From the sequence record OQ603353.1: a stretch of DNA of 64,000 nt, one strand, 5' to 3'. Positions 1,641 to 64,000 of this stretch are shown piece after piece (the first letter of the stretch is position 1; every line of letters starts with the position of its first letter). The notes beneath the pieces are model-generated. The model was not told the origin of the DNA. It was given only the letters and a program-made list of their open reading frames with translations, and did no database searches. The translations under genes were made by a program, and so were the position numbers.

Positions 1641-2621
1641 TCAGTCGTCCAAGCTCTCGAAGAGATCCGCGAGGTTGGCTCGGCTGACCACCCGGACCAG
1701 CTGGTCCTGCTGGATGAGGGCGTTAGTGAACACCGGATTGCCTTGGCGATTGCGGCGCACTTCGTACATGATCTTGAAGTTGTCCCACCGGACTGCCCTG
1801 CCTTGCGTCTTGATGCCCCGGTCAGCCTCGATCACAAGGGCTCGCGTGTTGGCACTGCTGTCCGTCCACTTGACCTCCACCACGCAGCCCGGTTGCACGT
1901 CTACAAACTTGACCCCGATCGGATAGCCCCCGTTGACCTTCACGTTGTTCATCTTGAAGGCCGTGTTGGAGTGGTGCACAATGTAGTCAGCGTTGAAGTG
2001 CTTGGTCCGGGGCTTGCGTACCTCAAAGTGGTCCGGGTCATCAAGCATGAAGCCAACCACGTCTGCCGCAATGTAGGCAGTGACGTAATCCACGTCAGGA
2101 GCCGACTCGTCCAGTGTGCCAACTTGGTGGCAGATGACGCCTCCGATCCGAACCTCGCGGCGCGAATCAAGGATGACGGCAAAGGAACCGTCGCCTTGAA
2201 GGAGGGTGAACGCGTCCCGCAGGCGACGGATGACCGGCGTGGTGTCATGAAGCATTTCCTTGCCACTCCGCTTCCACTCCTTGATGAACTTCTCCGAAGG
2301 GGTCAGCGGAGCCTTGGGCAGCTTGGCGACCGTGGCCGATTGGGTCGGCATCTGCTCCGGGTGCAGGGTAAAGACGACGAGGAACGCGTAGTTGGAGGCG
2401 ATCACTTCGACCGCCTTGACCTTCTCCTTGCGACGGCGCATGACGCGCAGGACCGTCTTACGCACTGCCGCCTTATCCGTGATGGTGTGGGGGAAGAAGA
2501 TCCGAATCTCATTCTGCTTGTGCAGGGTGGTCTGTCGGACGCCCTTCAACGGCAGGTGGAAAGCCTCGCACAGGTCGGACTTGATGAAGGTGTGATTGAA
2601 GCCGGTGATTGCGTTGCTCAT
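1641..2621 (-). CDS. Hypothetical early protein (326 aa)
   Basis: Long ORF with GAAGGA RBS before ATG 2621; first gene after a sigma70-type promoter. No family recognised. Confidence 0.75.
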   Translation of the reverse strand: MSNAITGFNHTFIKSDLCEAFHLPLKGVRQTTLHKQNEIRIFFPHTITDKAAVRKTVLRVMRRRKEKVKAVEVIASNYAFLVVFTLHPEQMPTQSATVAKLPKAPLTPSEKFIKEWKRSGKEMLHDTTPVIRRLRDAFTLLQGDGSFAVILDSRREVRIGGVICHQVGTLDESAPDVDYVTAYIAADVVGFMLDDPDHFEVRKPRTKHFNADYIVHHSNTAFKMNNVKVNGGYPIGVKFVDVQPGCVVEVKWTDSSANTRALVIEADRGIKTQGRAVRWDNFKIMYEVRRNRQGNPVFTNALIQQDQLVRVVSRANLADLFESLDD

Positions 2622-12936: not shown

Positions 12937-12987
12937 TCACCTGTCTTCGTGGAGGGGCACGTCCCCTCCGATTTCTGTAGCGAAGAC

Positions 12988-13767
12988 TCACTCGTCTTCG
13001 TATTCGTCTTCATCTTCGTCATGCTCTTCCACTTCCACTTCTTGTTCGGATTCTTCTTCGTCTTCTTCATCCTCTTCGTCGTCTTCATCGTCATCGTCAT
13101 ATACAGGCGGCAACGGCTTTGCGGGCTTCACTACCTTCTGTACTGGCTTGGTAGGGAAGGGAGGCGCATCATCTTCTTCCTCGTCCTCGGTATCGTCCTC
13201 TTCCTCAACAGGAGGTGCAGGCGGCGCTACCTTCTTCTTGCGTACCGGACGTTCTTCCTCTTCATCCTCATCCTCTTCCTCGCGGCGCTTCTTGTACGTC
13301 CGCTCGGGAATATCTTCCGCACTACGAATCTGCACAACACTGGTGATGCTAGGATGGCACAAATGAATTGTACCGTCTTCTTCATCAGTCAGTACGTACA
13401 TGCCACCCTGGACTTCAAAGTCGCTGACCTCAAACACGTCATACTCATGGTTCGGGTCATCAATCAGCAGGGTTGCCTGGGGTTCGTTGATGTAGAACGC
13501 TGCCTTGACTGCTGACAGCGGATAGGTCACGTCTTCAAACTTGCCACGGGACCGATGGATGCGGCGACGCAGGGTAATGTGAACGTCACTACGGCTAATC
13601 ACCTCACCGTAGACTTCAACGATTCCCGGATGCTGAATGGTTACAGTAAAGGGAATCTTCTTGACCGGCTTCTTGTGGGCCTTTGCCTTTTCCAACTTTT
13701 TCTTGGTCTTGACCTTTTCCGGCACAGCCTTCTTGGTCTTGGTAGGCGCAGGCTTGGTTTTGCTCAT
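12988..13767 (-). CDS. Beta-rich protein with basic N-terminus and long acidic tail; paralogue of 11798-12238
   Basis: See the paralogue alignment; C-terminal poly-D/E. Confidence 0.75.
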   Translation of the reverse strand: MSKTKPAPTKTKKAVPEKVKTKKKLEKAKAHKKPVKKIPFTVTIQHPGIVEVYGEVISRSDVHITLRRRIHRSRGKFEDVTYPLSAVKAAFYINEPQATLLIDDPNHEYDVFEVSDFEVQGGMYVLTDEEDGTIHLCHPSITSVVQIRSAEDIPERTYKKRREEEDEDEEEERPVRKKKVAPPAPPVEEEDDTEDEEEDDAPPFPTKPVQKVVKPAKPLPPVYDDDDEDDEEDEEDEEESEQEVEVEEHDEDEDEYEDE

Positions 13768-16490: not shown

Positions 16491-16516
16491 AAGAAAGCGA
16501 GCCCCGAAGGGCTCGC
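16491..16516 (-). terminator. Intrinsic terminator
   Basis: GCGAGCCC-UUCG-GGGCUCGC followed by UUUCUU. Confidence 0.8.
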
Positions 16517-17249: not shown

Positions 17250-17288
17250 GATGGCTTCCTTGATTCAATAGATGCCCGAAGGCGTGAG

Positions 17289-17438
17289 ATTTCAAAGTGT
17301 GTTTGGTATGCCATAAGCGACAGGCACACTCCCACACCCCTATCATAACACAAGTCAAGTCGGGTGACTACCACTCCTGACTTTCGTTCAGCTGCCGTTC
17401 AGGTTCCGAGGGTGGTCATTTCGAGCATCCTTTGAAAA
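17289..17438 (-). repeat. Early-promoter cassette copy 2
   Basis: Conserved leader AGTGTGCCTGTCG-N6-GCA-N2-CCAAACACACTTTGAAA, GTTCAG iterations, upstream arm CATCCTTTGAAAA. Confidence 0.8.
17342..17370 (-). promoter_or_regulatory. Sigma70-type extended -10 promoter
   Basis: TAGTCA-17 bp-TATGAT with TG at -15/-14. Confidence 0.7.
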
Positions 17439-17465
17439 ATCGAGGGGTCGGTGTTCTGACCCCTC
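17434..17465 (-). terminator. Intrinsic terminator
   Basis: GAGGGGUC/GACCCCUC stem then GAUUUUU. Confidence 0.75.
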
Positions 17466-26787: not shown

Positions 26788-26928
26788 TTTTCAAAGTGTG
26801 TTTGGCCTGCTCTAGACGACAGGCAGACTTTCTCACAACTACAGTATAGCACAAATCTTCTCGGTGTGCGGCCACCCCTGATTCCCGTTCAGCTGCCGTT
26901 CAGGTTCAGTTCGAGCATCCTTTGAAAA
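26788..26928 (-). repeat. Early-promoter cassette copy 3 (extended -10 TGCTATACT at 26843-26851)
   Basis: Near-identical to copy 4 over the leader and the upstream GTTCAG block. Confidence 0.85.
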
Positions 26929-26949
26929 AATCGACCCATTCGGGAAACG

Positions 26950-26983
26950 AAAAGGGGCCACCAAGATCGCTCCCGGCAGCCCC
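26950..26983 (-). terminator. Intrinsic terminator closing the modification operon
   Basis: GGGGCUGCC/GGUGGCCCC stem then UUUUCGUUU. Confidence 0.75.
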
Positions 26984-26988
26984 TAAAT

Positions 26989-37968: not shown

Positions 37969-39435
37969 TTAGTATTCGTCAGGGACAATATCCGGAGACG
38001 TGGTGGACGGCGGGGTAGTGTCGTCCTCCGTCTTGACACCGAGGCGGTTCAGGACAGCAGCACCCGCTGGGGTGTTGGCAAAGCTTTCAACCATCGCGCC
38101 CATGTTCAGGCCACCAGCAGCGCCGAACAGACCGGAGACCTTGTTGATGCCTTCGGTCGGGGTACCAGTGTTGGCGATGACCTTGACGCTTGCGCCTTCC
38201 AGCGCCTTGGCCTGTGCGATGCCGACTTCCTTGGTAGCGTTGATGCTTTCCACGCTCAGGAGGTACGTCTGATAGCCTTGGTTCTCACCGATTTCCTTGG
38301 CCAGTTCGATCTGAGTGGTGACCGGGGCACGCAGGCGTGCAGTCTCAGCGGCTGCCTCAGCTTCGCCTCGGGCCTGAATACCCTCAGCCTCACGCTGCGC
38401 CTGAGTCAGTGCTGCATCGGCCTCAAGCTCGATCTGACGCTTGTTACCTTCCGCCCGAATAACCTGCGATTCCTTCTGCGCAGTTGCGGCGATCAGGGCC
38501 GTCTTCTGCTGTGCTTCGGCGTTGATTACCGAGGTCTGACGATCTTCCTCTGCCTTGACCACACTCACTTCACGGCGAATGTCAGCGCCTCGCACTTCCT
38601 CAACCTTGCGCACTTCCATTTCGCGGGTCTTGGTGACCGCAGCTTCCTGCGAGACTTCCTGCTGGGTACGCTCCCGAGCAATACCCACAGTCTTTTCCTT
38701 CTCAGCAGTACGCTTGCCAATCGTCTCTTCCGATTCCTGACGGCGCATTTCCACTTCCTGCTGGGCTTCGATTTCCACCAGCGAAGCAGTGCGCAGGTTG
38801 CGTGCGACCTCAGTACGGCTTTCGGATTCGATCTGAGAAATCTTCTTTGCCATGATGTTGGCAATGACTTCCTGACCCGGCGCATCCTTAATGTCCATCA
38901 ACTCGATGGACTTGACGCTCTTGACGCCCCACGCCGGAAGCTGCTGCTGTACGTCCTCAGTGAAAGCCTTACCGAAGGTGCTACGCTCGGTCATGATTTC
39001 GTTAATGTCGTAGGTCGCCAGCATCGAACGCGCTGCACCCTTTACGATGGATTCCAGCTGGGAGGTCAGTTCCTCAAAGTTCTCAACGCTCTGCGCCGCC
39101 ACGTCCGAATCAGCGATCTGGAAGAAGGCTTCCACTTCGATACGGAACGGGGTCCGATCCTTATCGTATGCCTCGTAGTCGTTCAGGCGAACGCTGAACA
39201 TGGTAGTCGGCAGGATGCGGCGAGTCATACCGATGCGCGGGAACCATTCCGGCCACTTGTAGTAGACGTTACCTGCATCCTTGTCCTTGCCGTAGCTGAC
39301 GGTAGCCTTGGCTTGCTGGACAATGTGTACTTCGTTGGTGGGGACAACAGTGCGGCGACCGAATGCCCAAAGGCAAATGATCGCAAGCAGTGCAAGGATG
39401 GCGAGCACTGCGATACCGATGACGATGATTCCCAT
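37969..39435 (-). CDS. SPFH/Band 7 (flotillin-like) membrane protein
   Basis: N-terminal TM, RRTVVPTNEVHIVQ, SPFH core and long A/E-rich coiled coil. Confidence 0.9.
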   Translation of the reverse strand: MGIIVIGIAVLAILALLAIICLWAFGRRTVVPTNEVHIVQQAKATVSYGKDKDAGNVYYKWPEWFPRIGMTRRILPTTMFSVRLNDYEAYDKDRTPFRIEVEAFFQIADSDVAAQSVENFEELTSQLESIVKGAARSMLATYDINEIMTERSTFGKAFTEDVQQQLPAWGVKSVKSIELMDIKDAPGQEVIANIMAKKISQIESESRTEVARNLRTASLVEIEAQQEVEMRRQESEETIGKRTAEKEKTVGIARERTQQEVSQEAAVTKTREMEVRKVEEVRGADIRREVSVVKAEEDRQTSVINAEAQQKTALIAATAQKESQVIRAEGNKRQIELEADAALTQAQREAEGIQARGEAEAAAETARLRAPVTTQIELAKEIGENQGYQTYLLSVESINATKEVGIAQAKALEGASVKVIANTGTPTEGINKVSGLFGAAGGLNMGAMVESFANTPAGAAVLNRLGVKTEDDTTPPSTTSPDIVPDEY

Positions 39436-60903: not shown

Positions 60904-61044
60904 TTTTCAAAGTGTGTTTGGCGTGCTGCATACGACAGGCACACTACTCCACACGTACATTATAGCACAAGTAAATCGGGGTGCACGCCACCCCTGATTC
61001 CCGTTAAGCTGCCGTTCAGGTTCAGTTCGAGCACCCTTTGAAAA
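60904..61044 (-). repeat. Early-promoter cassette copy 4 (extended -10 TGCTATAAT at 60959-60967)
   Basis: Near-identical to copy 3. Confidence 0.85.
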
Positions 61045-61067
61045 ATCGAGGGGTCGGAACACCCTCG
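61041..61067 (-). terminator. Intrinsic terminator after the helicase
   Basis: CGAGGG/CCCUCG stem then AUUUUU. Confidence 0.7.
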
Positions 61068-62959: not shown

Positions 62960-63038
62960 AGTGCGTATTTACGCTGTAACGTTACAGTACCTTTACAGGA
63001 TGCCAAAACAGGGCGTTTCGGTAAAAATACTTCCGCCT

Positions 63039-63228
63039 TTAGACACGCCTGCGTTACAGTAAAATCTGAGCAGTCTGAGGGGAAACCGCCGCAGGGGTCG
63101 AAAACGCAGAAACGCGGATCCTTCAATCCCCAGCAATAAAAAACGCGGAGACTTGATGTTTTGACAGAAATTTTATGTAACGTACCCTCCCCTAGAGATA
63201 TTAGACACGCCACCGTTACAGTAAAATC
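63039..63228. repeat. 28-bp direct repeat pair (63039-63066 and 63201-63228)
   Basis: TTAGACACGCCTGCGTTACAGTAAAATC vs TTAGACACGCCACCGTTACAGTAAAATC (2 mismatches). Confidence 0.9.
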
Positions 63229-63242
63229 GTCTTTTCAGGTGA

Positions 63243-63282
63243 AAACCCCACCCCAAAGGGGCCAGCCTTTGGGGTGGGGTTT
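63243..63282. repeat. Perfect 17-bp inverted repeat with 6-nt spacer
   Basis: AAACCCCACCCCAAAGG-GGCCAG-CCTTTGGGGTGGGGTTT. Confidence 0.9.
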
Positions 63283-63837
63283 CGTACCCAGGTACACATC
63301 AGGAATCTCTAGCTCTACGTTTCTATGAAATCCCCACTAAGGCACAAACCTAGGAATGGCTCCGGCCTCCGGCCTTCTCCATTCGTACAGGTTGTTCTTA
63401 GGGGGAATGCCTTTTCGCTTACGCGATCCTCCCTGATTCAGCCTCTAGAGAACGAAATCCTCTAAAATCACCGCGTTTTTCGTAGTTTACCCTGTAGCTG
63501 GTAAGCCGGAGGCCCAAACTCCGGGTAGTTTAGGGTCCAACCTCCTAAAAATGGTTCCAGAACCTACATTTTCCTGCCTGCGTTTCCGGCAGTTCTGCCC
63601 TTACGGAACCACCCCGCACGGGTCAGGATCGACCCAGGAGGGTCAGAATGGGTCCAGAAGGCCAAAATCGCCTAGGATCGAGCATATCTACGCTGGATGC
63701 ACGCTGTTTTCTCGCAATTTGAGTGTACGAGGGCGATAGAACCCCTCAGCCTACCATCACCTGCTCTGGCGTTGTCCGGGTTGGGGTGGAAATTGTGTCA
63801 TAACAACTTACGGACAACTTCAACTGAGGAACACGTT

Positions 63838-64000
63838 GTGAATCTCATTCCAACTGTTTTTGCTTCACAGAAGCCGTCCCTTCCCAGCGCTGAGGTTGCT
63901 TTCGCTTCCTTTGGCTGCGAAGGCTGCGGCAACCACTTCTCGGTGCAGGCCAGCATGAGCACTCCGTTCTGCGTTCTGTGTGGTTGCGACAATACCACTC
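63838..64000 (+). CDS. Zinc-ribbon protein, 5' part (runs off the window)
   Basis: GAGGA RBS, GTG 63838, MNLIPTVF...FGCEGCGNHFSVQASMSTPFCVLCGCDNTT; not in the ORF track because there is no stop. Confidence 0.7.
   Translation, partial: MNLIPTVFASQKPSLPSAEVAFASFGCEGCGNHFSVQASMSTPFCVLCGCDNTT

Follow-up and report, generated by a model that had tools for sequence, protein, structure and literature searches.

A recurrent stretch of about 42 nucleotides in the DNA of a Xanthomonas jumbo phage is the first transcribed part of a composite early-promoter cassette of about 230 bp, four of which lie in the 64,000 nucleotides analysed here (the window). At a probability of roughly 40%, we read two inverted copies of one motif that bracket the promoter, M1 upstream and M6 in the leader, as a pair of double-stranded DNA operators, and the hairpin H1 that precedes M6 as a structure of the 5' end of the mRNA. 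The preliminary description had taken the 42-nt stretch for a two-hairpin leader and a candidate RNA antiterminator; it drew the conserved block too short, since conservation extends over about 230 nt and reaches upstream of the promoter.

Three phages match the window at 100% identity, namely Xanthomonas phage Ep026 (OQ603353; record position = window position + 62003), Erwinia phage Ep032 and PhiXhv-15; PhiXhv-12 and PhiXhv-16 match at 95%. The genome of Ep026/PhiXhv-15 comprises 227 kb. These phages are virulent jumbo myoviruses of about 228 kb, for which a new genus without close relative in GenBank has been proposed (PMC13340338). The long open frames of the window lie on the minus strand, as does every gene annotated in PhiXhv-15. 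Two other regions of the window stood out. At 1-1150 and 12950-13300, the repeat table lists long coding repeats of the minus strand, of GAA/GAG-type (acidic) and lysine/alanine-rich composition, which suggest histone-like or highly charged proteins. A non-coding region of about 1 kb upstream of the helicase gene (about 62960-64000) carries two copies of a motif of about 26 nt, TTTTACTGTAACG-NN-GGCGTGTCTAA, of which contig L293 has two close copies (TTTTAATGTAACG...) and contig L296 one; an origin or a region of divergent control is conceivable here.

The 17-mer CCAAACACACTTTGAAA, which corresponds to M6, is present without mismatch on the minus strand in three cassettes (Table 1) and with three mismatches at 2658-2674, also on the minus strand. 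These four matches compare with 0.22 expected, and none of 100 shuffled sequences reached four. The longer pattern AGT[G/C]TGCCTGTCG-N6-GCA-N2-CCAAAC..., whose part up to N2 corresponds to H1, keeps its spacing in the copies at 17, 26 and 60 kb, in which N6 reads CTTATG, TCTAGA and TATGCA. The repeated leader motif is real and far above chance, and the report of three equally spaced copies plus a diverged fourth is thereby borne out, including the N6 strings. No copies beyond these four were detected in the full genomes of PhiXhv-15, PhiXhv-12, PhiXhv-16 and Ep026.

In transcriptional order, the cassette consists of an intrinsic terminator that ends the upstream unit, M1, CTGAAC(GG) direct repeats with a period of 11 bp, a sigma-70 promoter, a G-rich start, H1, M6 and the ribosome-binding site of the first gene. 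The terminator is present in the 17-, 26- and 60-kb cassettes and absent from the 2-kb cassette. The 2-kb promoter reads TTGACA-N17-TATGAT, and in the other three the -35 box is weak and the -10 box extended; each leader copy begins 12-17 nt past an extended -10 box (TGnTATAAT, TATACT or TATGAT). The first genes differ from cassette to cassette and have no known function according to Pfam and PHROG. A domain common to the four, which would have been a candidate for a cognate factor, was not found, and the only related pair among the first genes compared consists of the 2-kb gene and its orthologue in contig L237.

Table 1. Elements of the four early-promoter cassettes, given in window coordinates. 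Cassettes are named after their approximate position.
Feature	Position	Strand	Remarks
17-kb: terminator-like hairpin right after first gene	16497-16516	minus	8 bp, UUCG loop, tail UUUCUU
17-kb: M7, second inverted near-copy of M1	17264-17280	minus	17-kb cassette only; 16 of 17 pairs including G-U
17-kb: M6	17290-17306	minus	downstream inverted copy of M1
17-kb: H1	17306-17329	minus	stem GUGUGC(C)/(G)GCAUAC, loop begins CUGUCG
17-kb: extended -10 box TGTTATGAT	17342-17350	minus	
17-kb: CTGAAC(GG) direct repeats	17384-17406	minus	11-bp phase
17-kb: M1 (TTTTTCAAAGGATGCTCGAA)	17420-17439	minus	upstream copy of the bracketing motif
17-kb: intrinsic terminator of upstream unit	17435-17465	minus	T run overlaps M1
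26-kb: whole cassette	26789-26984	minus	
26-kb: M6	26789-26805	minus	
26-kb: H1	26805-26828	minus	
26-kb: -10 box	26843-26851	minus	
26-kb: repeats	26885-26907	minus	
26-kb: M1	26910-26930	minus	
26-kb: terminator	26945-26984	minus	
60-kb: whole cassette	60905-61067	minus	
60-kb: M6	60905-60921	minus	
60-kb: H1	60921-60944	minus	
60-kb: -10 box	60959-60967	minus	
60-kb: repeats	61001-61023	minus	
60-kb: M1	61026-61045	minus	
60-kb: terminator	61041-61067	minus	
2-kb: whole cassette	2656-2811	minus	diverged; without upstream terminator
2-kb: M6	2656-2675	minus	
2-kb: 5' hairpin	2682-2717	minus	
2-kb: -10 box	2716-2721	minus	
2-kb: -35 box	2744-2749	minus	
2-kb: repeats	2764-2786	minus	
2-kb: M1	2789-2811	minus	

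A fifth promoter of the early type is located outside the window, at about 38.6 kb of PhiXhv-15 (38560-38750). It reads TTGACA-N17-CATAAT and has four phased TGAAC/TGAAT units and an M1-like sequence, GTGCAAGTTGTCC, with no clear H1 or M6; the orthologue of its first gene (MKRKSP...) lies behind the cassette at the topoisomerase locus in contig L238. The statement that the leader stands behind every early promoter was thus too strong, given this sigma-70 promoter with CTGAAC repeats and without the leader motif. The repeats themselves, whose midpoint lies some 70-95 bp upstream of the start, look like a site for an activator or a protein of the response-regulator type. As a separate observation, a box GAACCTGAACGG-N3-CTGAACG, with inverted GTTCA pairs behind it, occurs very frequently beside the starts of genes for OmpR-type response regulators, among named genomes mainly in Acidobacteriota. 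No Xanthomonas genome matched the exact pattern, and a host response-regulator site was set aside as an explanation for the phage repeats.

Comparison beyond the closest phages was based on metagenomic contigs, for which we use our own handles. The cassettes of PhiXhv-12, PhiXhv-16 and L109 are nearly invariant (99-100% identical) and of no use for covariation. Scanning metagenomes with the repeat box delivered three phage cassettes (L126, L141 and L161), and more contigs were reached through homologues of the topoisomerase that adjoins the cassette. Amino acid identity of this enzyme to that of Ep026 is 72% in L237, 60% in L238, 45% in L239 (a contig of 221 kb) and 54% in L141, the latter over its partial copy. 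A homologous cassette was found on each of these four contigs, and the lineage of L239 has a second one in L295; related cassettes are accordingly present in at least four uncultivated relatives with topoisomerases 45-72% identical. Scans of IMG/VR with exact patterns of the leader motif or the repeats returned chance matches only, without cassette context, and searching IMG/VR with the helicase or with a topoisomerase fragment retrieved no relatives. Four sequencing runs labelled "RNA?" contain the phage at flat, contig-like depth; they are probably DNA rather than RNA, and no starts, ends or joints could be read from their contigs.

The 5' part of the leader has the hallmarks of a conserved hairpin. 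Across the three Ep026 copies, the variable position of AGT[G/C]TG finds its partner among the N2 bases (G-U, C-G and G-C), and 18 of 18 cells of the H1 stem pair. A covariance-model alignment was built from these copies, the loop variant of PhiXhv-16 and the counterpart in L237 (AUUGCGC/GUGCGAU). In this alignment, which comprises five sequences and was itself fitted to the structure, 30 of 30 cells pair and three of six pairs carry double changes, a result matched by just 2 of 500 column shuffles. Sliding the partner strand reduces pairing to 13-65%. The non-Watson-Crick pairs, five in number, are without exception G-U when read on the sense strand; on the other strand they would be A-C mismatches. 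Because of the compensatory changes and the uniform strand of the G-U pairs, H1 fits a real hairpin, most simply one of RNA. It has a stem of 6-7 bp and a loop of 12-13 nt, whose start, CUGUCG, is invariant. The 5' hairpins of the 2-kb cassette, L238 and L141 are different and larger, and most of the ten leaders are predicted to open with a stem-loop about 10 nt or less from the likely start. Overall folding of the four Ep026 leaders is uneven (z-scores of -3.2, -2.1, 0.0 and 0.1), two of them folding no better than shuffled sequence.

The second hairpin of the preliminary description, with a CACA loop in the 3' part of the leader, fared differently. It cannot form at that place in L238, L161, L141, L237 and L126, and the exchange of CAAA/UUUG for GCCAAG/CUUGGC, previously seen as co-variation, shifts the pairing register; the region is an inverted copy of M1. 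The proposal to build a covariance model and search related phages yielded a split result: the 5' hairpin is kept, among paralogues as well as in the relative with a 72% identical topoisomerase, whereas the 3' hairpin is not conserved. Judged by this comparison, M6 is the downstream arm of an inverted motif and is not a conserved hairpin.

M1 and M6 have a common core, which at 2 kb reads TGCCAAGTGTGC and in the other three cassettes TTT(T)CAAAG. Conserved in M6 are its sequence, roughly RCASACTTKSRRGAAA, and its mirror relation to M1. The Ep026 form TTTCAAAGKRTG is confined to the cassettes, with three forward sites, three inverted sites and one site with one mismatch vs. 0.85 expected, and M1/M6 as a general phage promoter was rejected on account of this confinement. 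An exact inverted match between the two arms exists in eight of ten cassettes, in which the sequence varies and the architecture stays constant. We scored the longest exact complement, as unrestricted duplex energy between upstream region and leader proved uninformative. Among the Ep026 cassettes it measures 12 nt at 2 kb and 8, 9 and 9 nt in the remaining three; on the contigs it measures 14 nt (L238), 13 nt (L161) and 8 nt (L141), five of these seven values having a shuffle p of 0.01 or less; the eighth match (L239, 10 nt) was spotted by eye. In L237 and L126, M6 is kept and M1 is absent. Spacing is strict: M1 precedes the repeats by exactly 12 nt in six cassettes and by 23 nt (12+11) in a seventh, with differing spacer bases, the repeats are separated from the -10 box by 59-63 nt, and the -10 box from M6 by 43-47 or 54-56 nt. 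The distance between M1 and M6 is 124-126 or 135-136 bp, i.e. 11.8-12.0 or 12.9-13.0 helical turns, a helical phasing that rests on one or two independent indels only.

These features suggest a mechanism in which M1 and M6, some 12 or 13 helical turns apart, bracket a host sigma-70 promoter and would be bound as duplex operators by one putative regulator. The regulator would clamp or loop the early promoters, where we infer both its action and the direction of regulation; for example, the early promoters may be shut off as the phage sigma factor takes over. H1, at predicted positions of about +8 to +33, would sit at the 5' end of the early mRNAs and protect or mark them, by acting as a 5' stem-loop that hinders decay or by binding a protein. 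The conservation of M6 even where M1 is missing and the fixing of spacings at the level of DNA support an operator pair. A search for HTH_3 proteins as candidate regulators found none. Some observations speak against the operator reading. GCCAAG occupies both arms in the 2-kb cassette and TCAAAG both arms in the other three, and such a joint change within one genome better fits base pairing or concerted evolution than recognition by one protein. Moreover, when read-through RNA is folded in silico, M1 is paired with leader bases in three of four cassettes.

A switch away from the sigma-70 cassettes is plausible because the phage encodes a sigma factor and CTGTAAATA sites precede seven genes. 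The sigma factor, a protein of 338 aa encoded outside the window (OQ603353 225384-226400; L298:385-1401), matches phrog_17569 'RNA polymerase sigma factor' (E 9e-50) and weakly Pfam Sigma70_r2. The seven CTGTAAATA sites (1284, 1590, 6897, 13807, 23001, 36973 and 48700) are all on the minus, i.e. coding, strand and lie, in each case checked by coordinates, a few tens of nucleotides before gene starts. The version ACTGTAAAYA occurs three times vs. 0.07 expected, and relatives have ACTGTAAACA or CTTGTAAATAAG at equivalent places. CTGTAAATA probably represents the kind of promoter that this sigma factor uses. As a Pfam RNA polymerase beta subunit was not found in the phage genome, while control genomes matched, the phage probably redirects host polymerase; a search for a T7-like polymerase gave no match in the phage, nor in any control genome. 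Given the CTGTAAATA sites, much of the window is probably served by internal promoters of this type. With these sites and the sigma factor, tens of kb need not depend on the four cassettes, contrary to what had been supposed, and there is less need for antitermination.

Pairing of M1 and M6 could alternatively take place in RNA. In transcripts reading through from the upstream unit, M1 would pair with M6 (at 17 kb, alternatively with M7). The stem so formed would enclose the promoter RNA and could be a site of processing, by RNase III for instance, or could insulate one unit from the next. Complementarity that is held despite sequence change in eight of ten cassettes, and the coordinate difference of both arms between the 2-kb cassette and the other three, are what one would expect of such a stem. 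Minimum-energy folds use it in three of four cassettes (M1:M6 of about 18 bp at 2 kb, M1:M7 of 16 bp including two G-U at 17 kb, M1:M6 of 9 bp at 26 kb), the exception being the 60-kb cassette, and the longest stems are seen where the upstream terminator is absent (2-kb cassette, L238). However, M1 is located upstream of the cassette's own promoter, from which it is not transcribed, and in three Ep026 cassettes it follows an intrinsic terminator, so that it would seldom be transcribed at all. Outside the exact core, mismatches on the sense strand are A-C in 26 and G-U in 10 cases, which is the opposite of H1 and gives no sign of selection for pairing in sense RNA. The strict distance of M1 to the repeats has no explanation at the level of RNA, nor does pairing account for M6 without M1 in L237 and L126. 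We consider RNA pairing unlikely and favour the DNA reading of M1/M6.

The cassettes also mark joints of recombination. PhiXhv-12 has another first gene at the 60-kb cassette, and the break falls on the ribosome-binding site. On the other side of this cassette, L296 has a helicase homologue of only 38% identity in place of the helicase, and identity resumes at the terminator and extends through the cassette. The 2-kb first gene (window 1641-2621) forms a patch of 70-92% identity within a background of 98-100%. Genes adjoining cassettes thus appear as hot spots of replacement or divergence (window 1641-2621; L109, L296, L099). In T4-type phages, composite terminator/promoter sequences known as PeSLs mediate gene swaps (PMC4122927, PMC2839356). 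The Ep026-type cassettes resemble them as short modules of terminator and early sigma-70 promoter, repeated within each genome and bordering gene replacements: a terminator stem-loop is found in three of four cassettes, sigma-70-type boxes in all four, and break points of gene replacement between close relatives coincide with them. They differ in being only four to five per genome, in belonging to another phage group (the new Xanthomonas jumbo genus and its uncultivated relatives), and in their phased CTGAAC repeats, M1/M6 and covarying H1, of which we found no PeSL report. One may go further and deny the leader any dedicated function, with the inverted arms as relics or recombination substrates of PeSL-like modules homogenised by recombination, and conservation as the outcome of concerted evolution. 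Cassettes 99-100% identical next to swapped or diverged genes fit this idea. Yet lineages with no more than 45-72% identity in a core enzyme retain the stem of H1, the core of M6 and the exact spacings, and between the modules spacer lengths are fixed whereas spacer bases vary freely, which makes the absence of function improbable in our view.

RNA antitermination, as originally proposed, now appears doubtful. H1, with or without M6, would modify RNA polymerase, either directly as in put or through a phage protein as in nut/boxB, and early transcripts would then pass downstream terminators. A covarying hairpin with a conserved loop immediately behind early promoters is what this explanation predicts, and the 17-kb unit argues in its favour: its first gene is followed by a strong terminator-like hairpin (Table 1), beyond which ligase genes lie without a preceding CTGTAAATA site. 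Phage lambda has the layout pL-nutL-N-tL1, which this unit resembles in having a first gene followed by a terminator. Because of that hairpin, control of read-through is conceivable at this unit. HK022 put and lambda nut share with the cassettes a conserved leader element behind early promoters and at least one real RNA hairpin. In contrast, put needs two larger, adjacent stem-loops (about 65-70 nt), while here one small hairpin is conserved and the second is absent from relatives. No boxA-like CGCTCTT(T)A was apparent on inspection of the leaders, and H1, with its 6-7 bp stem and 12-13 nt loop, is unlike the 5-bp stem and pentaloop of boxB. Known from sequence alone, the Ep026 leaders have neither sequence similarity to put or nut nor a recognised partner protein. 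Rfam gave no match at the gathering threshold, and hits with E up to 5 were noise on or near the upstream terminators. A six-frame search of the 227-kb genome with PF03589, PF06530 and PF02357 (Q families and NusG) found no match, and hence no Q family or NusG paralogue, whereas control genomes matched. Furthermore, folding is at the level of shuffled sequence in two of four leaders. The 2-kb cassette seems to serve one gene only, as does its L237 orthologue, each unit being closed by a hairpin and then a CTGTAAA(T/C)A site, and the fifth early-type promoter does without the element. In a combined version, H1 with its conserved CUGUCG loop would be recognised in processive antitermination of a new type, dependent on a phage protein or factor-independent, and would license host polymerase starting at the four cassettes to pass terminators such as that behind the 17-kb first gene, while M1/M6 would gate the same promoters as DNA; this version appears rather improbable.

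In fimS-type switches, short inverted repeats surround a promoter, and inverted repeats of 8-14 bp likewise bracket the promoter here. That M1/M6 are recombinase sites flipping the promoter segment is nonetheless very improbable, since all independent assemblies (five of phage genomes, at least six of metagenomic origin) have it in one orientation, no strand-change joints were seen in the four sequencing runs (contigs only, which can hide rare variants), all genes are co-oriented and the phage is virulent (PMC13340338).

Both the operator reading and the hairpin have parallels in known systems. At the E. coli gal promoter, the operators OE and OI are bound by GalR as a pair that loops out the promoter. 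M1 and M6 are similarly copies of one motif, upstream and in the transcribed leader, around a sigma-70 promoter, and are whole helical turns apart (about 12 or 13, from few independent events); they differ from OE/OI in being inverted and asymmetric, in lying beside activator-like repeats, in recurring at four phage promoters and in having only a putative regulator. Bacterial and phage mRNAs can be stabilised by a 5'-terminal stem-loop, as in the ompA 5' UTR. Most cassette leaders of Ep026 and its relatives are predicted to begin with a stem-loop as well, with the difference that the CUGUCG loop is conserved, which is not required of a pure stabiliser, and that the start position is a predicted one. 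A literature search found no published description of this cassette, which is a variation on two known themes, repeated early-promoter cassettes and operator pairs.

To our knowledge, little is known about the timing of early genes in jumbo phages without an RNA polymerase of their own. A whole lineage of phages that are probably of this kind, to which Xanthomonas biocontrol candidates belong as well as at least four uncultivated relatives, has a compact early-promoter module that can be dissected and offers four natural replicates per genome for studying early shut-off, mRNA protection or antitermination. The cassettes mark where these phages exchange genes. If the operator reading is true, it points to a regulator of these promoters; if the RNA reading is true, the leader would represent a new type of antiterminator.
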